From the sequence record OR532817.1: a DNA stretch of 64,000 nt; one strand, given 5' to 3'. The notes beneath the pieces were generated by a model. It had not been told where the DNA came from. It saw only the letters and a program-made list of their open reading frames with translations, and made no database searches. The stretch's first letter is position 1. Each line of letters opens with the position of its first letter. Positions 2,426 to 31,241 of the stretch are shown one piece after another. Made by a program: the position numbers and the translations under genes.

Positions 2426-2980
2426 ATGGGATTAGATATCTATAAATGTAAAATTAGTTCTACTAAACAAGAACATGGTTTTATTACATGTTCACAAGAA
2501 GAGATTGATTCAAATAAATCAATTAAAGAACTATTCCAGAAATATAAAAATTATATCAATATCGGTACTGAAGAATACATTGATATTGAACAAAGTTTAA
2601 TCAAATTTAATCTTTCTGATGAATGGTTTTTATCTGGATATGAGTTCAATGAAGATGAGGATTCATATTATGCAGTATTTGATTGTACTCTACCATTGTT
2701 CGATTCCGTAAAAGTATTATATAATGAACTTATCACAAAAGATGAAAAAGTTTATACATTATATTACACAGAAATTGGCTATCAACGTAGAGATTATAAA
2801 CCTGGAATCTATGCTGATCTTTGGGGATGTGACCAGGACGATCATGACGGATATTACAGCTTAAATGTAGTAACAGATAATTCAGTACTTGAACTTGTTA
2901 AAATGTATGCGAATGAAAATTCTCCACTTAGTCAATGGGTACTAAACGATAATGATGAATTTATTATCTTCGATTATTGA
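2426..2980 (+). CDS. hypothetical phage protein (MGLD- N-terminus)
   Basis: GGAGG RBS upstream, 184-aa ORF. Confidence 0.7.
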   Translation: MGLDIYKCKISSTKQEHGFITCSQEEIDSNKSIKELFQKYKNYINIGTEEYIDIEQSLIKFNLSDEWFLSGYEFNEDEDSYYAVFDCTLPLFDSVKVLYNELITKDEKVYTLYYTEIGYQRRDYKPGIYADLWGCDQDDHDGYYSLNVVTDNSVLELVKMYANENSPLSQWVLNDNDEFIIFDY

Positions 2981-3010
2981 GATTTCTAAATAAAATAAAA
3001 CATAACAAGG

Positions 3011-3904
3011 ATGTTTATGAAACCTATTACAGTACTGTCATTATTCAATGGGATGAGTGTTGGGTATATGGCACTAAAGAATGCTGGAATTCCAGTACAG
3101 AAATATTACTCATCAGAAATTGATAAATTTGCTATTGCTGAATCACAAGCCAACTACCCTGATATTATTCAGTTAGGTGATATAACTAAATGGGAAGATT
3201 GGGATATCGACTGGGGTAGTATTGACCTACTTATTGGTGGAAGTCCTTGCACTGATGTAAGTTTTGCGGGAAAACAAGAGGGGTTAGTTAAACCAGATGA
3301 AAACGGTGATGGTGGAACACGAAGTGGTTTATTTTATATAATGATTGACATATTCAATCATATTAAATCGATAAATCCAGATTTAAATTTTTTATTTGAA
3401 AATGTCAAGATGAAAAAAGAACATCTTGAAGAATTTAATAATAATATAGGGGTTGATCCTGTTCTAATCAATTCTGAATTATATACTGCTCATTACAGAC
3501 AGAGATATTACTGGATTAGCTCAAATAAGCTAATTCTCAATCCCGCCTACAAAGCCCCAGTACTTCAAGATATTATTGTTAATGCATATGCTGACAGGAA
3601 TAAATCATATTGCATTGATGCCAATTACTGGAAAAAGGGGAATATCACACAGTACTTACGCAAATCAAGAAGACAGATTGTTTATCTAAGAGACGATCAT
3701 GATTTATTCAGTACTGAAGAAAAAATTAACACATTTAAACTCAATGTTGACTATAGACATTTAACAGTAGACGAAGTATGTTTATTACAGGGTGTACCTG
3801 TTGGATTTTTTAAAGTAAGTAGTGCAACACAAGCATACAAAATGCTAGGTAATGGATGGACATGTCCAGTTATTGAACATCTATTAAAGGAAATTTTCTT
3901 TTAA
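3011..3904 (+). CDS. DNA (cytosine-5) methyltransferase
   Basis: Motif I LSLFNG, catalytic GGSPC, FENV, RQRYYW, C-terminal LGNGW. Confidence 0.92.
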   Translation: MFMKPITVLSLFNGMSVGYMALKNAGIPVQKYYSSEIDKFAIAESQANYPDIIQLGDITKWEDWDIDWGSIDLLIGGSPCTDVSFAGKQEGLVKPDENGDGGTRSGLFYIMIDIFNHIKSINPDLNFLFENVKMKKEHLEEFNNNIGVDPVLINSELYTAHYRQRYYWISSNKLILNPAYKAPVLQDIIVNAYADRNKSYCIDANYWKKGNITQYLRKSRRQIVYLRDDHDLFSTEEKINTFKLNVDYRHLTVDEVCLLQGVPVGFFKVSSATQAYKMLGNGWTCPVIEHLLKEIFF

Positions 3905-4634: not shown

Positions 4635-5998
4635 AATAAAACTAATTTATACCACTGGTAATACATTCGAAACATGTGAAGTAGAAAGATTTATTAATTG
4701 CGAATGGGATACAGAAGAGAAAGCTATTCATGAAATGAATAAAATCCGAGAGCACTGGATTTTCAATAAAAAAATTAGTTCTACTCGTGATAAAGACACA
4801 AAGAAGAAATTGGTATCACAAGCTATTATGCAATCATGGTATAAACCTGGTAATTCTGAATATACTATGTTGCTAGTTGATAATGATGGAAATTCTTTTG
4901 AAATGTATGCTGCATGGTTAGGGTATTTTGAAATTCTTCACAGTACTGAAGTAGTCAATGCAAACCAATTAGACAACTATATTGATTTCGATGAATTAAG
5001 ATCAAATATGGGATTGTGGTAATGGATGGTCCAACTGTACTAAAAATCCTTCGTAAATTTAAACACCCAATGTTGTTCGGACGTTGGAAATCGTTAAAAG
5101 AAAATAAAAATACCGACGATCAAAAAAATATCAATTATAGATGGTATTGGGATTATTCAAAAGATTATGGTGATTCACTTTGTATAAAAATTAAATTCAA
5201 TAATTATAATAAATGGTCTAGAGATAAAAAATACATATATTCATATGATATTCACTTATCAAAGGAACATGTATTTATTTTTCATAGAAGTTACAACAAA
5301 TTTTCATTGAAACATGATGTACTATTTTCTATAAATGAATTATATGAAGATTTAGAAAGTGTATTATTTCAGCAATCATTATTGACTTCTACTGGTATGG
5401 TGAGTACTCAAGAAATTGAAGTAATAAGAGAATTAAAAGATATATATTTTTCAAAGGAGAAATGATGGGTTACGGTATTCAATATAAATGTAATGATGGT
5501 AAGGACTATTATTGTACTAGTTCTTCATTTGTAACTTTTAGTGAAAATATTGAAAGTATAGCAGAATTTGCACAACAAAAAACTGCATTAAAAATAGCCA
5601 AAGGATTTACAAAATCAACTGATATGGAAGCTGAATTTGGTGAAGGTAAATTGTTTGTTATTAAAGTGGTGAAAGTTCCACTTCAAATAGAAGAAGTACA
5701 ATTAGTAAAATTAAAACCCGGCTACCGAATTTATTCTGAAGAGGAAGAAGAATATTACAAAGGTAGTAAAAAATCAACAAAACGTTTTGGATATCACAAT
5801 AATTTTGATGAATTACATTGCAGTACTGTGTTTAAAACAGAAAAAGAAGCACAAAAAACAATTGATGCAATTCTTGATGATTATCATAGTTATGCATATA
5901 AGTATGACCCTAGTGATAAACAGTATGAACAACATGTCAAATCTTATGAACCATATTATCTAATGGCAAAAAAATTAAAAATTGTTTATATTGAATAA
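4627..5998 (+). other. three translationally coupled hypothetical CDS (4627..5022, 5016..5465 FQxS family, 5462..5998)
   Basis: Overlapping start/stop codons; ESVLFQQSLL in the second. Confidence 0.65.
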
Positions 5999-5999
5999 A

Positions 6000-6035
6000 A
6001 AAAGCTTGACATATAAATTGACAATGATATAATAA
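6000..6035 (+). promoter_or_regulatory. sigma70-like promoter
   Basis: Tandem TTGACA hexamers followed by TGA-TATAAT. Confidence 0.7.
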
Positions 6036-6063
6036 TTGCAAATCAACCAAAGAGTAACTTTGT

Positions 6064-9990
<3,927 letters not shown>

Positions 9991-13493: not shown

Positions 13494-13581
13494 GGCCGTA
13501 TGTCCAAATTGGTAAAGGAGACAGACTTAAAATCTGTTGGTGATATTCACCTTCTCGATTCGAGTTCGAGTGCGGCTACCA
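13494..13581 (+). tRNA. tRNA-Leu(UAA)
   Basis: Cloverleaf with long variable arm, ACAGA-CTTAAAA-TCTGT, TTCGAG T-loop, encoded CCA. Confidence 0.92.
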
Positions 13582-13610
13582 AATTTATAGTACTTCATTA
13601 GGTAAACAAT

Positions 13611-13934
13611 ATGTGTACTGAAGCAAGAAGATATGTTTATATTTTGGTTCGCAAAGATTTAGAACTAAAGGATATTATTGTTCAAACTGCTCATGCTTCA
13701 TATGAAAGTGCAAAAGAATTTAAAAATAATGCTGATAGAACATCTATTATAGTTTTAGAAGTCAAGGACTTATACAAACTAAATGATGCTAAAAGTTATT
13801 TAAATTCTAATGGCATTAATTGGACTGTGTATACTGAAAAATCTTTAGGATTTGGAGAAACTGCTATCAGTACTGAAGCACTCAATAACGAACAACGCAA
13901 AACTATGCGTAAGTTCCAATTATTGAAAATATAA
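13611..13934 (+). CDS. second PTH2-superfamily protein
   Basis: YILVRKDL..IIVQTAHASYE, IIVLEV, G.GETAIST, C-terminal FQLL. Confidence 0.7.
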   Translation: MCTEARRYVYILVRKDLELKDIIVQTAHASYESAKEFKNNADRTSIIVLEVKDLYKLNDAKSYLNSNGINWTVYTEKSLGFGETAISTEALNNEQRKTMRKFQLLKI

Positions 13935-13947
13935 ATATAATAACAAA

Positions 13948-14023
<76 letters not shown>

Positions 14024-14028
14024 AATTC

Positions 14029-14124
14029 AACAGGTAGTAACGCTCTTAGGTGTACATTAATATAGGAATAAGGGTTAACAGTACTGTACACAAACGAGTA
14101 ACCCCGAAAGACCCGAAACCTGTT
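14029..14124 (+). ncRNA. candidate pseudoknotted ncRNA
   Basis: AACAGG/CCTGTT closing stem, GTGTACA/TGTACAC stem, loop GGGTTA complementary to downstream TAACCC. Confidence 0.5.
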
Positions 14125-14134
14125 AAAGTTTTAC

Positions 14135-14184
14135 GGATGATTATAAATCTGAATTGACAGAAACAGCTAAAACTGTTATTATCC
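14135..14184 (+). ncRNA. 50-nt D-armless tRNA-like RNA, copy 1
   Basis: GGATGAT/ATTATCC; TCTG-AATTGA-CAGA; AACAG-CTAAAA-CTGTT. Confidence 0.7.
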
Positions 14185-14192
14185 TATTTTAT

Positions 14193-14377
14193 TCCACAAT
14201 CAGACGTATATGGTGTAAGTTACGTCGATGAAATCCAGAACAAGATCTCTGGTACTCTAGGAAGTGGTGAATGTTAACCTAGACGGGTTTGTTAATTGGA
14301 CGATAAGCAATTAATACTTGACTAGCAGGTTTAAACTAGAGGTGACTGTCCTTCACTAAACTGGAAAACCGGGTGGA
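14193..14377 (+). ncRNA. candidate ~185-nt multibranch ncRNA
   Basis: TCCAC/GTGGA closes six hairpins (GACGTA/TACGTC, CCAGA/TCTGG, CTAGG/CCTAG, TTAATTG/CAATTAA, CTAG/CTAG, GTGA/TCAC). Confidence 0.55.
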
Positions 14378-14395
14378 CTTTTAATTAAAAAAGTG

Positions 14396-14424
14396 TTGAA
14401 CAAAATGTTCAATAATGATATAAT
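14396..14424 (+). promoter_or_regulatory. repeated tRNA-island promoter with TTGAAC-N5-GTTCAA palindrome
   Basis: TTGAAC-17-TATAAT with TG extension; related copies at 15341, 15766, 15972, 16179. Confidence 0.7.
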
Positions 14425-14515
14425 AAGTATCAATGTAAGGCGTGGAACAATGTTTACAGAAGTTACTTAGTAGCCTGTACGCCCCACGTCAAGGTAGCCG
14501 AAAGGCAAGTTTAAT

Positions 14516-14565
14516 GGGTGGTTATAAATCTGAATTGACAGAGACTATTAAAACAGTCACCATCC
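14516..14565 (+). ncRNA. 50-nt D-armless tRNA-like RNA, copy 2
   Basis: GGGTGGT/ACCATCC; TCTG-AATTGA-CAGA; GACT-ATTAAAAC-AGTC. Confidence 0.7.
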
Positions 14566-14753
14566 AAATTTTAATTTAATAGTTTAGTATGAATAAAAAA
14601 CAAATACATAAACATTATGATGAAATTGCAGTGAAGGTTTTTCGTGGTGAATTAGGTTATAAACCATCTGTTAAATCTAAATATTCAAAATCTTCTTCAA
14701 TAAAGTTCAATCATAAAATAGAGTTTAAATAATACTGGACAATAATATATAAA

Positions 14754-15263
14754 ATGAATATCACTAATGTAAAAGATTTTTTAGAATATTTTATTAAGAA
14801 TACTCGTGCCCGTGATGAATTAGAAAAAAATGGATTCGTTGATGGTTACGATTGCACTAATTTCTTTTATACTATTGATAAACATGAATATTATGTCGAT
14901 GCAACTTTAAGTGATGATCCATATTATATAAAAGATGGGTATTGCATTGGATTTACGTTCGAAGATAAATCACTAGATGCACCAATAAACTTTTATACAT
15001 TATATTATAATAAAAAAGATAATATTTTGAAATTAGGATTTACTTGGGATGATGAAGAAGATGTTGTATTCAATTGTAATACATGGTTAGAACATGATTC
15101 ATTCTTTCAAAGTACATTAATTCATGACTTTATGACAACAGATTTAGAGTACTGGAAAAACTGCATAGAATTACTTAATGTAATTTATAATGAACAAGTT
15201 AAAAAATTTGACAATAGTTTACACAATGATGACATTTATAATAAAAACTTTATGGGACGATAA
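14754..15263 (+). CDS. hypothetical protein, FQxS-motif family
   Basis: HDSFFQSTLIHD..TTDLEYWKNCI. Confidence 0.7.
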   Translation: MNITNVKDFLEYFIKNTRARDELEKNGFVDGYDCTNFFYTIDKHEYYVDATLSDDPYYIKDGYCIGFTFEDKSLDAPINFYTLYYNKKDNILKLGFTWDDEEDVVFNCNTWLEHDSFFQSTLIHDFMTTDLEYWKNCIELLNVIYNEQVKKFDNSLHNDDIYNKNFMGR

Positions 15264-15371
15264 TCGTAGGACGGGTCAGCATTTGGTAGTATGTTCGGCT
15301 GAATAAAGTATAAACGTCATCACCAAATTTAAAAAAAGTGTTGAACAAAATCATCAATACTGATATAATAA

Positions 15372-15608
15372 ATGAAATTTTTTTTAAGGTCATATGATAT
15401 GTTGACAGATACTAATAAAAAGATGTTTATTCAAATAGGTTTTTTTACTCTTCAAGATATCATTGATAAGGCACATGAAAAATGGCCTAATGTAAAACTT
15501 GAAGATATTCATATTGAAATAGAATGTATAGAAGAAAATAATACTTCATATCATGGTCTGAAAAACGTAAAAGTTTGCACTGAATATTACGTATTAAGTA
15601 TTGAATAA
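15372..15608 (+). CDS. hypothetical protein
   Basis: ORF directly after promoter at 15341..15369. Confidence 0.55.
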   Translation: MKFFLRSYDMLTDTNKKMFIQIGFFTLQDIIDKAHEKWPNVKLEDIHIEIECIEENNTSYHGLKNVKVCTEYYVLSIE

Positions 15609-15635
15609 TTCAGTACTGTATAATTGACTTACTAC

Positions 15636-15709
15636 GTCCCCTTAGTTCAGTTGGATAGAACAACTGCCTTCTAAGCAGTAGGTCACTGGTTCGAGTCCAG
15701 TAGGGGATA
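15636..15709 (+). tRNA. tRNA-Arg(UCU)
   Basis: Cloverleaf, CTGC-CTTCTAA-GCAG, TTCGAG T-loop; ACCA lies 2 nt downstream rather than directly after the discriminator. Confidence 0.9.
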
Positions 15710-15858
15710 TACCATACAATATGGGAATAGTTAGAAGATATTCCCAATTTTAATTTAAAAAAGTGTTGAACAAAAAGTTCAATAATGATATAATGGTATT
15801 ATAAAAGGTTGTAATACTTAATATTAACTTTTAAGAAGATAATTAGTTATCATACACA

Positions 15859-15950
<92 letters not shown>

Positions 15951-16008
15951 TAAAATTCAATTAAAAAAGTGTTGAACAAAAAGTTCAATGCTGATATAAT
16001 AAAAGAAT

Positions 16009-16099
<91 letters not shown>

Positions 16100-16107
16100 G
16101 ATTTTAT

Positions 16108-16157
16108 GGATAGTTATAAAGTTGAATTAACAGCGACACTTAAAATTGTCACTATCC
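16108..16157 (+). ncRNA. 50-nt D-armless tRNA-like RNA, copy 3
   Basis: GGATAGT/ACTATCC; GTTG-AATTAA-CAGC; GACA-CTTAAAAT-TGTC. Confidence 0.7.
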
Positions 16158-16217
16158 AAATTTTAATTTAAATAGTACTTGACAAAAATGTTCAGTACTG
16201 ATACAATAAAGAATATT

Positions 16218-16528
16218 GGCCCCTTAGCTCACGCTTTGGTTAGAGCAGACGACTCATCGATAAATGGTGACTTTCACAAGTAATTGTGATTGAAAAACTG
16301 GATGAATTCAGGGAAACCTTAACACATAATGGTGATGGCAATCCTGAGCCAAGCCCAATAAGCGTATTGGGAAGGTGCAGAGACTAGGTGGTTCAGCACG
16401 ATCTTGCTGTGTAATACACCAATAGCGTCCGGCATCCTTATAGGATGATGATATAGTCCTTTCTATAATGAAAATTATAGGTAAAAAGAATCGTTTGGTA
16501 CTGTGTTCGACTCACAGAGGGGCCACCA
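16218..16528 (+). tRNA. tRNA-Ile2(CAU), intron-containing (exons 16218..16257 and 16489..16528)
   Basis: Joined exons give GGCCCCTTAGCTC...GACGA-CTCATAA-TCGTT...AGGGGCCACCA, closely resembling E. coli ileX. Confidence 0.9.
16258..16488 (+). mobile_element. group I intron (IC3-like), 231 nt, no ORF
   Basis: Core AATTCAGGGAAAC, AATCCTGAGCCAA, GTGCAGAGACT, GATATAGTCC; 5' exon ends in U, intron ends in G; GUGA can pair with exon UCAU giving the U.G splice-site wobble. Confidence 0.92.
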
Positions 16529-16532
16529 CACA

Positions 16533-16606
16533 TTGTACTCTTCTCCCGTAAGGAGAATGACAAAAAGCTATCCGAAAGATAGAAAGCCTGAATTAACAGG
16601 GTGCAA
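16533..16606 (+). ncRNA. candidate 74-nt four-way-junction RNA
   Basis: TTGTAC/GTGCAA closing; TTCTCC/GGAGAA, CTATC/GATAG and CCTG-AATTAA-CAGG hairpins. Confidence 0.55.
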
Positions 16607-16618
16607 TTAAAATACATT

Positions 16619-16693
16619 GGTTCGTTGGCCTATTGGTCGGCCAGCAAACTGTTAATTTGCCTCAAACTAGTTCAATTCTAGTACGAACCGCCA
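16619..16693 (+). tRNA. tRNA-Asn(GUU)
   Basis: GGTTCGT/ACGAACC, GCAAA-CTGTTAA-TTTGC, encoded CCA. Confidence 0.9.
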
Positions 16694-26996: not shown

Positions 26997-27893
26997 ATGA
27001 AAGAAGTTGATCTAAATGAACTAAGTGCTGAAATCATGGAAACATTATTTGATGAATCTGATATTGAGCAATCAAAAAATATTAAGAGTACAAAAGATAA
27101 TATCAGTCTCAAACATCCAACTGGTGTTACAAATGAAATGCTGTTAAATGAAATACATAATGGTATTAATGTAAAACAAAATCGTGAATTACTTATCCGT
27201 TATAATTATCCACTAGCAGTCAGTATTGCTAAACGTTGTAAATGTTATATTCCAGAAGAAGATAAAATTTCTTATGCAGTAGAGGGTCTTTTGAATTCAA
27301 TTCATAATTTTGATGTTACAAAAGGTGTATTATTCAGTACTTATGCCAGTGCTTCCATTTACATGACAGTGATGAACATGAGTAATGAACATAATAATTT
27401 AGTTTATATCCCACGCCATGTAAGTGTACATAATGTTAATATTCGTAAATTTGCAAATGAATACGAAAAGAAACACGGCAAAAAATGCAAACCTGAACTT
27501 ATTTCAAAAGAACTCGGAATTAATGTTGATACTGTTGAGTTGTGTTTGTCTTTCCAGGAAACCACATCTCTTGATACTCCAACTTCTGATGATAGTACTG
27601 CACTAATTGATACCATTGCCAGTGATTGTAACGTAGAACAAAATGACGTTGATAGTATTGTTCTGGAATTGATGAATGAACTAGAACCAAAAGAAAAGGA
27701 AATCCTTTCCAGAATTTATGGTTTGAATGGATATGCACCAGAAACCTATGATAGCTTGATTAGTACTGGATTTTATGATAAAAAGGGTAAACGTATTACT
27801 GTTCGCGGAACTTTACATTACAAATTCAGTACTGCACTTGAGAAACTAAAGCGTTTGGTTCGTCTAAAAGGATTAACTGCCAAAGATGTTTAA
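26997..27893 (+). CDS. RNA polymerase sigma70-family factor (divergent)
   Basis: Region 2 EGLLNSIHNFDVTKGVLFSTYA, region 3 ELISKELG..SLDTP, region 4 ELEPKEKEILSRIYGL. Confidence 0.85.
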   Translation: MKEVDLNELSAEIMETLFDESDIEQSKNIKSTKDNISLKHPTGVTNEMLLNEIHNGINVKQNRELLIRYNYPLAVSIAKRCKCYIPEEDKISYAVEGLLNSIHNFDVTKGVLFSTYASASIYMTVMNMSNEHNNLVYIPRHVSVHNVNIRKFANEYEKKHGKKCKPELISKELGINVDTVELCLSFQETTSLDTPTSDDSTALIDTIASDCNVEQNDVDSIVLELMNELEPKEKEILSRIYGLNGYAPETYDSLISTGFYDKKGKRITVRGTLHYKFSTALEKLKRLVRLKGLTAKDV

Positions 27894-27919
27894 ATTGATA
27901 TTTTTTCTTTATTAAATAC

Positions 27920-27948
27920 TTGAACAAAATTTTTTACAGTGATATAAT
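27920..27948 (+). promoter_or_regulatory. extended -10 promoter driving large ncRNA
   Basis: TTGAAC-17-TATAAT with TG extension. Confidence 0.7.
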
Positions 27949-27957
27949 GTTTGTAAT

Positions 27958-28580
27958 ACATGGATGTTGGACATTCTTTTTGAAAAGAACGTATGGATAA
28001 AAACCCGATTAGCCGAAAATGTAACGCTACGGATGAGTATAACCAACATATACGAGATGCAGAGGATACCCGAAAGGCGAGACGGCATCTAAAAGGATAG
28101 GAAATAGCACTGCCTATCCCAAGCTTACATTAGGCTTGATAGATCGCAAATCTGGTTGAGTCCAGACAAATAAAGAGTGTAAGGGAGATTATTTTCTTTT
28201 AGATATTTTGGAAATAATCACAGTATTGAATTGCTTGAATAGTTCGGTACTGAAGTGCAAGTATGTTTAAACTTGTGACCGTTGCATGTGACTGCGATAG
28301 GACGAAACAGGGCAACCCGCGTTCGTGTACCAAAAGGTATAATTCGCAATTCAAGGAATTTCGACAGCTACGAGCTTCAAGGCTTAGCTTTTTTATTTCT
28401 CTTCCCCTCCCTGTGGGGGGATGAAAATATCTCGTGCAAACGCCTTCAAGTATTGAAATTCACGAAGTGAATTGAAATTACTTGTTCTGTAGTCGAACGA
28501 CAGTGAGACGTGAGAACAAGTAATTTCTGCATGTATCAACGAAGTGCAAACGGAGTTGATACATAGCACTTTAAAACATT
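27958..28580 (+). ncRNA. candidate ~620-nt ornate structured RNA
   Basis: No credible ORF; helices AGATGC/GCATCT, GGATAGG/CCTATCC, TCTGG/CCAGA, long-range TTGAATTGC/GCAATTCAA, AATTACTTGTTCT/AGAACAAGTAATT, TGTATCAAC/GTTGATACA. Confidence 0.65.
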
Positions 28581-28612
28581 ATTGAATTCAATAATTAATA
28601 TTATTATGGTTA

Positions 28613-31241
28613 TTGAAGAAATCAAATCGGAGTACTGAAATGAACACTATTATTTTTTTGATTATACTGAGTACTGGAACAACTACTACGGTAATTAAAG
28701 AAATGCCTTCTTTGGTACAATGTAAAGTAATTATGAATTCCGTTTATACACAACAAAAAGAAAAGCAAAAAGAAACAAGTAAAACGGATTACTATTGTTT
28801 GAATTCAACAACCAACACTAAGTACTATCCAGATGAGTGAGTTCACATTTCTTTGTACTTTTTATTATTATACTTCTGCTACTTCAAAGAAGTATGTAAA
28901 AGAAGAAATAAACGTATATACCAGTTCAGTACAAAAAGCTATTTGCGAGATACATTTGTACTTAGTTTGTTGTGAAGTAATTGATATAGAATACATACCG
29001 TACAGGAATAAATCTAATGACTTTAAGACTAATTACTGAAGTAGATAAATCAGTAAGTGAATTATCAACTGAAGAATTGAATAAGTTGGACTGGAGTTCA
29101 GTCCCAAAATCACAACTTCTTTCTATTTCAGATGATCGTTTGATGAAATGTCCCATCGACATTTTAACCCAAAGTTATTCTTGTGATAACTATAGCAATG
29201 ATTTGTGTTTATATATACTCACTTCTAAAATAAAGAAGTGCAAAGATTTTCGAAATGGTTATGCATTATATCATCTATTAAGTAATTTTTTTAATCCAGA
29301 TTTTATCAAGAATAATAAAAAAGAAATTCTTGAAATGTTAAAACGACATGAAGAGATTCATAGTACTGTTACGTTTCCATCAGTTATTCAATACTTGATG
29401 AAACATGGAATCATTTCATTTTTTGATTTAAATATGACATTTGAAACAATCAATGACACATGGGATGCCTTGGAATCCGATATTCCACAAGAAGATTGGA
29501 TTAAATTAATCACACGTACAAATTACCTGTACTCAACACTCACTGAACACCATTCAATACAGAATAATGTAATACCATTAAGTACTGAAAACTTATGGAA
29601 ATGTGGGATTAAAATTAATCCAGTTGTTGATCTGTCGTGGGTTAAAAATGGCACATATGAATGTGATGATGATTATGTAGACATTTTACTGGAAGATTTA
29701 ATAGAACAATTAAATTGTACTTCAATCACATGGGATGAAGTGCTAGAAAAATTCAATACATATAAACTTGATAGGGACAACAATCCCCCTTATGGTGTTA
29801 ATTTTATCAGTACTGTATGGGAACATCACATAATTGACACAAAGTTTGAATTGAACAGAGATGATTTTTTCAAGAAAAATTTACATCTTTACAAAACTAT
29901 TGGATAAAAAGTCTTGACATGGAGTACTATTTGAGTAATAATACTCCTATCTTAATTTAATGAGGAAACACTGATGAAAACTCTATTACTTATTGTAGTC
30001 GTGGCTTTTGGTGCATGGTGGTTTTCTGAAAATTTCAGTATAACTTCAAAAAATGAACCACAACCTGTTCCACAAGAAGTACATACAGATTCTATTGGAA
30101 CTAAGGTTGATAAAATAATTAAAGTAATCACGGAATAAATGTTATGGGATTAGATGTAACTGAAGCTCAAAGAATATTAGAAAACCTCAGAGAAATTAAT
30201 TCAAAATTTGAACGTAATAATCTCTGTACTGAATGGGATAAAAAACTACCCAATAGATTTAGTGAAATCACTAATGAAATTTTATTCAGTACTGGTTTAG
30301 TTTGGATTGAACATACTTCTCTGTATAATGTTACATATCGCCATGAAGGTTATGTTGTTGAATACAATGAATATCTAGATCAGGGTATGAAAGTACTCAA
30401 AATGTGGAGTACTGTTTATAACGAGCTAGTAATTATCTGGATTAATGACAGTAATGGTGTTGACTTTGGTGATTTAGAAGAAAGCACTACTAAGGTAGCA
30501 CCGATTTTCGTTGGTTTGTCTGATAATATCATGTAAGTATTAAAAGAAAGGTTTTGACAATGAATGAAAAATTGGCTTTAATTTGGAAAAGTGGTTATGA
30601 CTTTAAAGTAACACCAAAGGAACTTAGAGTATTTCGTACTGAATACTGTGAGTATCTTGATTTAGACCAGTATAATACCATTGTTCGTATTGAACACAAT
30701 GGTGATGTTGAAGGTCATATCAGTGAAGTACTTGATAAAGCTATTTCAATTATTGGGGTAAAATGATGATTAGTTTTTATTTGGCAGTGATACTTATTAA
30801 TGGTAATATCGAACGAACACTAGGAAATGGGTTTTATAAAACCCCTGAAGAATGCTATACGGCGACAAATTGGCCTCGTGATAGTGAAACTCGTGAAGAA
30901 TTCAAATGCATCAAAGCTACTGGTGATTTTGTAAATTTCAAAGTGATTGAGGTAAAAAAATGATTCTTTCAAAAGAAGAACGTGATATTGTACTACACGC
31001 TTTATATTTTCTTGAGAATGAAAGTATGCATACGGATGCTTCTATGGCGTTGATTGAACGTCTTCAGAAAGAAGAAATGCCAAAGATTTATCGTATCCGT
31101 TATCTTGATGGGGCTGGTGGTGATCGTATTGCCATTGCTGAATCACGAGAAGAAGCAGAACAAATCTTCACTGATAATTATTTGAATCCTTTTTTGATGG
31201 AAGAAGTTTGTGAAGTGAAAAATGGTACATTTATTGGTTGA
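28613..31241 (+). other. hypothetical CDS run (28631..28840, 28833..29039, 29017..29907, 29974..30138, 30144..30536, 30554..30766, 30763..30963, 30960..31241)
   Basis: Coupled ORFs; 29974..30138 is a small membrane protein missing from the track. Confidence 0.55.

Follow-up and report, generated by a model that had tools for sequence, protein, structure and literature searches.

What lies between the sigma-factor gene and the next open reading frame (ORF) of a Klebsiella jumbo phage is the question raised by this locus, at which GenBank and RefSeq records leave the RNA described here unannotated and show either nothing or tiny hypothetical coding sequences (CDS) on mixed strands. The DNA analysed, referred to as the window, is a stretch of 64,000 nucleotides (nt) from record OR532817.1. 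It belongs to an Alcyoneusvirus of the RaK2/K64-1 type: in blastn, the stretch matches Klebsiella phage RCIP0023 at 100% identity and K64-1 and RaK2 at 99-100%, all of which are Alcyoneusvirus phages with genomes of ~346-358 kb. The initial annotation of the window had proposed a ~620-nt ornate non-coding RNA at 27958-28580, and all main elements of such an RNA are indeed present there. The conserved RNA spans ~27955-28567 on the + strand (~610 nt), in agreement with the earlier limits. It is best filed as a new family of a known kind, the large, ornate, phage-borne non-coding RNAs, and stands outside Rfam.

The central evidence comes from the core of the RNA, where the covariation of the helices in the aligned sequences is overwhelming. 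A MAFFT alignment of 42 non-redundant sequences was analysed with RNAalifold by sub-region; five sub-regions were treated separately because whole-length RNAalifold on a single MAFFT alignment was noisy, and the 3' domain was assessed sequence by sequence because its alignment was too poor for a consensus. For the core (28218-28362), RNAalifold on the independent MAFFT alignment gives 26 pairs, and compensatory double changes are seen in 20 of these (n = 42). In the core alignment (164 positions), 99.1% of cells form standard pairs, compared with 81.0 ± 0.5% when the partners are shuffled (0 of 500 shuffles reach the observed value) and 37-48% when they are slid by 1-3 columns. Changes on both sides occur in 21 of the 26 pairs, as against 13.6 ± 1.5 after shuffling (0 of 500) and 3-7 after sliding, and the covariation score falls from 0.572 to 0.227 upon shuffling. 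The check for homolog covariation suggested in the initial annotation is therefore strongly positive. A covariance model built from the core (R1) matches the window once, at 28218-28361 (115.2 bits, E 7.5e-29), and finds 59 copies among the collected loci, with zero matches on ten chance-match control loci.

Within this core, the P8 hairpin forms in 42 of 42 homologues despite their differing sequences. Its pairs, counted residue by residue apart from the core consensus structure, covary (e.g. UA:21 AU:18 GC:12 CG:6). Almost the whole P8 loop pairs in turn with a strand ~110 nt downstream. This second helix carries compensatory changes at all seven pairs, with zero broken pairs in the 42 sequences, and is 100% paired in the 58 distinct sequences of the model alignment; GUCGAAU/AUUCGAC, AUUGUAU/AUACAAU and UUCAUGU/ACAUGAA are among the variants seen in relatives. 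Since both P8 and the distant helix of its loop covary, the element is a genuine pseudoknot, in which the loop of a hairpin is connected with a strand far away. The long-range TTGAATTGC/GCAATTCAA pairing proposed initially is not the conserved register and arises because UUGAAU stands twice in succession; the conserved helix is CUUGAAU/AUUCAAG (28234-40/28349-55). GNRA-type loops, also mentioned at that stage, are not a conserved feature of the family.

The folding energy and composition of the locus point in the same direction. The 623-nt stretch on the + strand reaches -188.5 kcal/mol (z -8.84), its dinucleotide shuffles averaging -144.6 ± 5.0; for the opposite strand the z is -7.13. The G+C content is 0.39-0.41 in the RNA vs ~0.30 in the flanks. 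Complementarity, checked base by base, yields more than 20 helices, among them stems of 15, 12, 10 and 10 base pairs (bp). In the core alignments, several pairs alternate G-U with A-U or G-C, a behaviour that fits only an RNA of the + strand, and not a DNA element or a transcript of the opposite strand.

Judged from the sequences, the locus is non-coding. The longest ORF in the region, on either strand, has 62 amino acids (aa), and none of the 42 homologues shares an ORF conserved in position or strand, as the initial annotation had anticipated in seeing no credible ORF; one homologue lacks any ORF of ≥40 aa. ORFs of 35-62 aa do exist on both strands. RefSeq K64-1 (NC_027399) annotates four tiny CDS, gp305-gp308 (23-58 aa, mixed strands), over window positions 27912-28569 (positions 5991-6670 of the collected locus L001), and other phage records show different small ORFs, or none, over the RNA locus. 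That the locus encodes small proteins such as these is nevertheless close to inconceivable, taking into account that the length differences between homologues are not multiples of three and that the substitutions in the helices are compensatory. The small-CDS calls across the RNA locus are almost certainly spurious.

The RNA also possesses its own promoter. Upstream lies an ORF of 298 aa (26997-27893), which matches Sigma70_r2 and Sigma70_r3 and is annotated in K64-1 as an RNA polymerase sigma factor; 27 nt past its stop codon begins an extended -10 promoter, and the RNA likely starts at A27955 or A27956. A TGRRAC-N17-TGnTATAAT/TATACT motif is found at the same place before nearly all 42 non-redundant homologues, prophage copies included, so that the promoter postulated initially is both present and conserved across the family. 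The RNA sits between complete genes, the next ORF beginning at 28613/28641. Its description as lying directly downstream of the sigma gene is correct as to position, while a functional link to that gene is not borne out, as the neighbours of the other copies differ.

The same phage genome carries a second copy ~88 kb away, outside the 64-kb window and ~80% identical, and this paralogue is present in every Alcyoneusvirus genome; within the window, blastn detects no second copy. Between the paralogues the promoter is conserved, and the first ~220 nt are only ~65-70% identical, with whole hairpins swapped for hairpins of different sequence. The segments 28181-28300 and 28340-28607 are essentially identical, and the two hairpins between them differ by compensatory changes. 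The identity reaches ~28607, i.e. ~40 nt past the last conserved hairpin (28181-28607 vs ~2790-3230 of locus L003). This pattern suggests that gene conversion has occurred in patches or that constraint is unusually strong. The gene preceding the paralogue encodes a protein with no relationship to the sigma factor.

Beyond Alcyoneusvirus, partial blastn matches are obtained in Asteriusvirus (121Q, PBECO4 and many E. coli and Salmonella phages), Mimasvirus (CBB, XbC2), Eneladusvirus (fHe-Yen9-04) and in Erwinia, Cronobacter and Serratia phages, each in a gene-free gap of 620-840 nt; once these gaps are aligned, the entire RNA is seen to be conserved, together with its promoter. The family RNA measures ~610-800 nt. 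Every Rak2-like jumbo phage examined carries 2-5 diverged copies, and the hosts of these phages include, besides Klebsiella, Escherichia, Salmonella, Yersinia, Erwinia, Pectobacterium, Cronobacter, Serratia and Xanthomonas. A wider homologue set was assembled by pattern scans of viral, genome and metagenome collections, followed by sorting with nhmmer and the covariance model. In the phage collection, 62 records hold 163 places, at most five per genome, and all of these phages are jumbo phages of 320-386 kb; four copies are present in one jumbo genome from a metagenome. As the pattern is loose, its genome and metagenome matches are mostly chance hits in G+C-rich genomes, and the taxonomic range is a lower bound. 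After the nhmmer filter at least 83 matches are retained, at least 66 of them essentially full length and at least 44 non-redundant at 95% identity. The neighbouring genes are not the same in the different copies, and those downstream are unrelated. In the Mimasvirus and Eneladusvirus copies the next gene is an ADP-ribosylglycohydrolase (XbC2_348 annotation, N-terminal GDALG motif; L005 3109-4035, L013, L028, L045).

The copies in bacterial chromosomes all reside inside integrated elements of Enterobacterales, as single copies, and the RNA usually stands directly after the integrase gene, facing a cI-type repressor. The gene order is the same in Citrobacter amalonaticus, Enterobacter chinensis and several metagenomic contigs: the host pilin/hofB genes come first, then a large serine recombinase and, on its strand, the RNA, followed by a convergent cI-type repressor (helix-turn-helix plus Peptidase_S24), a divergent cro-like HTH_35 gene and more genes. 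In an Enterobacteriaceae isolate a tyrosine integrase replaces the serine recombinase, and in Serratia fonticola the RNA lies at the very edge of the element, which carries a serine recombinase and two ParB-like genes and adjoins host rof and tilS. Two of 5,426 complete E. coli genomes contain the RNA, in an island beside ffs and within a 1.4-kb stretch left unannotated by PGAP. In E. coli LR-29-1 (L286 7791-18341), this island extends over ~10 kb between ffs and ybaA, with the RNA in the 1.4-kb gap, and encodes an IS3-disrupted tyrosine recombinase, DUF4326 and DUF488 proteins and a dual-OB-domain protein. Another gene of the RNA-bearing temperate elements, two genes past the cro-like gene, specifies an LprI-like (lysozyme inhibitor) protein (L190 11035-11451 and equivalents).

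The region of P14 raises the question of whether the RNA acts in cis. In most homologues, a separate G+C hairpin followed by U6-7 is located here, at about two thirds of the length. In the window copy, P14 competes with an alternative hairpin (28366-28389), which is followed by U6AU3 and resembles a terminator, the two structures being mutually exclusive. Such features would be consistent with a leader or attenuator whose fold senses a signal and chooses between the internal terminator-like hairpin and read-through downstream. The GAYGA and CGUCAG motifs, each occurring twice, could permit alternative pairings, and no strong terminator precedes the ORF at 28613/28641. Nonetheless, a cis-acting role is quite unlikely: there is no constant downstream gene, the next gene being convergent in the 121Q/JNE01 group and the prophages having the convergent cI. 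In the relatives, moreover, the hairpin plus U-run is a separate element that is missing in homologues L009, L015, L024 and L027. The stretch that follows this element ranks with the best conserved parts of the RNA, the 3' domain is conserved too, and no riboswitch family matches the locus.

A size of ~550-650 nt, an own promoter, several copies per jumbo genome and a home in mobile elements would also suit the primer or R-loop RNA of a replication origin, comparable to ColE1 RNA II or to the promoter-dependent origins of T4, with the copies marking several origins. The G-run/C-run and polypyrimidine tracts at 28399-28420 could be read in the same way. ColE1 RNA II, likewise structured and ~550 nt in length, is encoded on a mobile element and has a sigma-70 promoter of its own. 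However, the RNA studied here has a covarying pseudoknotted core and invariant unpaired loops, which are typical of RNAs acting as folded molecules, and is found in none of 72,556 plasmids. Signs of an origin are lacking: the cumulative GC skew does not turn at the locus, genes run in the same direction on both sides, and no replication initiator is linked to the RNA in the small integrated elements. An origin primer is therefore very unlikely.

The place of the RNA among known families was assessed with Rfam 15, using a gathering-score scan of the whole window and scans at E ≤ 10 of 27850-28680 and of a divergent prophage copy. The latter return only chance matches (a CRISPR repeat, microRNAs, mitochondrial tmRNA), the Rfam scan of the chromosomal loci gives zero matches, and no description of the RNA family was found in a literature search. 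The gathering-score scan detects five tRNAs and a group I intron (16232-16480) elsewhere in the window, and nothing at the RNA locus. Since no ribozyme, intron or riboswitch family matches the RNA locus at E ≤ 10, while a true group I intron is recovered from the same window, a ribozyme that processes itself or acts on another substrate is unlikely, even though the large pseudoknotted core with the invariant unpaired GACCGUUGCA, GAAAC.G.GCAACCCGC and UAAGGGAG follows a pattern typical of catalytic RNAs. No processing-site signature is known, and splicing is unlikely because the RNA interrupts no gene.

Among large RNAs, ROOL and GOLLD are the closest in character. Both form RNA-only cages, whose purpose is unknown and whose hosts are awkward to handle; ROOL self-assembles into an octameric cage and often lies beside tRNA islands. 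Like ROOL, the RNA described here measures ~600 nt, lacks ORFs, contains many helices and pseudoknots, resides in phages and prophages and is probably expressed as a unit of its own. Like GOLLD, it is large and ornate, and between the two paralogues of one genome its peripheral and 5' parts vary more than the conserved remainder. GOLLD has a constant 3' and a variable 5' region, and both ROOL and GOLLD bind further copies of themselves (bioRxiv 10.1101/2024.12.08.627333). The likeness in size and phage context drawn in the initial annotation, which had allowed that the RNA may be new, is thus sound. A very divergent member of ROOL or GOLLD, in place of a separate family, is nevertheless highly improbable. 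Neither covariance model (RF03087, RF01998) matches this copy or the divergent prophage copy even at E ≤ 10, and no tRNA adjoins the RNA at 23 of 25 loci. The hosts are Gammaproteobacteria, the phages infecting Enterobacterales, whereas ROOL occurs in Firmicutes or rumen organisms, and several diverged copies are present per genome. Compared with GOLLD, which often exceeds 800 nt, the RNA is shorter, and across the whole family its 5' domain is conserved as well, both halves keeping blocks and helices. The nearest tRNA in the window ends at 16693, 11 kb upstream of the RNA.

Abundant ORF-less transcripts of 236-619 nt have been defined by RNA-seq in jumbo phage PA5oct, which belongs to the same broad jumbo-phage clade and shows that such phages make large non-coding RNAs (PMC7318152). 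The R1 core model finds no match in the first 50 kb of PA5oct (1-50 kb, containing ncRNA001 and ncRNA002); identity with ncRNA001 or ncRNA002 is thereby ruled out. No Pseudomonas phage appears in the blastn results.

Taken as a whole, the locus at 27955-~28567 (+) is probably a free-standing gene whose product is a non-coding RNA of ~610 nt, made by the host sigma-70 polymerase from the gene's own extended -10 promoter and acting in trans as a folded particle. The differing neighbours, and the convergent orientation of some downstream genes, argue for a trans-acting unit. The RNA unit would behave as a "moron", an independent promoter-to-hairpin cassette between unrelated genes, transcribed early in lytic infection and constitutively in lysogens by the host sigma-70 polymerase. 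Its product would act as a compactly folded particle, in which the core and the invariant loops may bind a conserved partner, either a host or phage macromolecule or, as in ROOL and GOLLD, further copies of the RNA itself. As for the variable hairpins, they would either be decoration that the RNA tolerates or adjust specificity from one paralogue to another.

Several points weigh against this interpretation. Transcription is deduced from the conserved promoter and the G-U/A-U alternations, and the step to a trans-acting particle would follow by analogy. The placement of the 3' end is tentative: the window copy lacks a canonical terminator ahead of the ORF at 28613/28641 and may be read through into it; conversely, the terminator-like hairpin plus U-run two thirds along the RNA in most relatives would make a shorter main product possible. 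The model-fitted alignment (A3) leans towards the structure, although the independent MAFFT alignment (A2) agrees in the overall picture. That the 3' halves of the two Klebsiella-phage paralogues are identical may be due to gene conversion and not to function.

A bolder proposal, which is conceivable but doubtful, is a new class of large RNA in virulent jumbo phages and temperate integrase elements, with an activity of its own (a multimeric particle or catalysis), specificities that differ between paralogues, and possibly a contact with the translation apparatus through pairing of UAAGGGAG with 16S rRNA. UAAGGGAG looks like a Shine-Dalgarno sequence and is complementary to the 3' end of 16S rRNA; a conserved start codon or ORF after it is absent in the 42 homologues.

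The remaining architecture consists of a 5' domain closed by P1, the multi-helix core junction locked by the pseudoknot, and a 3' domain (see the table below). Many unpaired nucleotides are invariant, and the peripheral hairpins are free in length. P1, P2, P3 and P5 in the 5' half covary, P1 with sequence variants among the relatives. P4 closes an extra inserted hairpin in most relatives, which the Klebsiella copies lack. The CCCC/GGGG hairpin yields little covariation because it is nearly invariant, and the block around it contains a CGUCAG-like motif (here CUUCAAG) twice. In the 3' domain an outer stem, an inner stem of variable sequence and a final hairpin are retained; the GAACGA.AGUGA motif, which caps the inner stem, is enclosed by at least four pairs of differing sequence in 34 of 42 homologues. 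The A+U palindrome beyond the RNA may be a weak, possibly bidirectional 3' end or terminator; no conservation of it is seen in the aligned homologues outside Alcyoneusvirus, and it is the source of spurious mir-451 matches on both strands.

Coordinates of the promoter, helices and conserved elements of the RNA in the window
Feature	Position	Strand	Remarks
Promoter	27920..27948	+	TTGAAC 27920-25, 17-nt spacer, extended -10 TGaTATAAT 27940-48; consensus scan
5' domain, part 1	27964..28049	+	P1 27964-70/28043-49 encloses P1a and P2; followed by conserved junction GAUGAG
P1a hairpin	27974-79/27984-89	+	complementarity check
P2 hairpin	28005-07/28030-32 plus 28010-13/28026-29	+	near-invariant loop CGAAAA.GUA; AU:27 CG:11 and CG:32 UA:7
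P3 (GAUGC/GCAUC) enclosing P4 (28070-71/28076-77)	28056..28089	+	complementarity and covariation; P3 pairs canonical in 41-42/42, AU:21/UA:18 and UA:29/AU:13
P5, window-specific P5a, conserved GAUAGA, P6, lineage-specific P6a	28095..28166	+	P5 28095-101/28113-19; P5 counts GC:30 CG:6 AU:3 and AU:23 GC:14
P6 hairpin	28141-44/28150-53	+	variants UAAGG/CCUUA, UAGGA/UCCUA, AGAU/AUCU
UAAGGGAG junction	28180..28187	+	AAGGGAG invariant or nearly so in aligned homologues
P7 variable-length hairpin	28187..28219 (28187-96/28210-19)	+	10 bp here, base-by-base check; 3 bp to ~90 nt in relatives
P8 hairpin	28221..28252 (28221-32/28241-52)	+	12 bp, base-by-base check; 7 nt of the 8-nt loop (28233-40) form the pseudoknot 5' strand
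Pseudoknot helix	28234-40/28349-55	+	7 bp; MAFFT and model alignments
Core junction	28257..28348	+	P10, GACCGUUGCA, 3-bp helix, P11, P12, P13
P10	28257-62/28271-76	+	
Invariant GACCGUUGCA	28277-86	+	
3-bp helix	28281-83/28290-92	+	
P11	28293-97/28344-48	+	covaries, UA:22 CG:13 AU:10 GU:8
P12	28300-04/28320-24	+	covaries, GC:27 AU:25; frames invariant loop GAAAC.G.GCAACCCGC
P13 variable hairpin	28327-31/28336-40	+	length varies freely
P14 hairpin	28363-69/28373-78 (element 28363..28399)	+	one bulged C
Highly conserved block	28404..28448	+	polypyrimidine run, CCCC/GGGG hairpin, GAUGAAAAU, loop closed by UGAA/UUCA
CCCC/GGGG hairpin	28407-11/28416-20	+	canonical in 40-42/42
Loop closed by UGAA/UUCA	28422-25/28445-48	+	
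3' domain	28457..28567	+	three hairpins/stems
First hairpin of 3' domain	28457-63/28467-73	+	
15-bp stem	28474-88/28513-27	+	cap is conserved motif GAACGA.AGUGA; base-by-base check
Final hairpin	28529-40/28555-67	+	includes 10-bp stem 28531-40/28555-64, base-by-base check
A+U palindrome AUUAUUG-AAUU-CAAUAAU	28578-84/28589-95 (28578..28607)	+	perfect; U-rich tail

Elsewhere in the window, a tRNA gene with anticodon CAU (16217-16527) seems to be interrupted within the anticodon loop by the group I intron (16232-16480, 104 bits). Inspected by eye, the 5' half ends in GACGA CUCAU, and the 3' half resumes with AA UCGUU, followed by the T arm, the AGGGGCC acceptor strand and ACCA. ARAGORN reports six other tRNAs in 13494-16693, the split CAU tRNA not being listed. 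A TTGACA-17-GATACAAT promoter lies just upstream of this gene.

OLE, ROOL, GOLLD and raiA, the large ornate RNAs of bacteria and phages, are among the least understood functional RNAs. The family described here equals these in complexity: the RNA has a length of ~610-800 nt, its core is pseudoknotted, and dozens of its unpaired bases are invariant. Recognition of the family also corrects the annotation of a locus across which spurious small CDS have been called in the databases. Its hosts, phages of E. coli, Salmonella and Klebsiella together with a few E. coli chromosomes, are organisms in which genetics, RNA-seq, pull-downs and phage engineering are routine, and the purpose of large phage RNAs could therefore become directly testable. 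The presence of 2-5 diverged copies, the occurrence in both lytic and temperate homes and the position on the integrase and immunity side of the integrated elements suggest that the RNA provides a general benefit to mobile elements.

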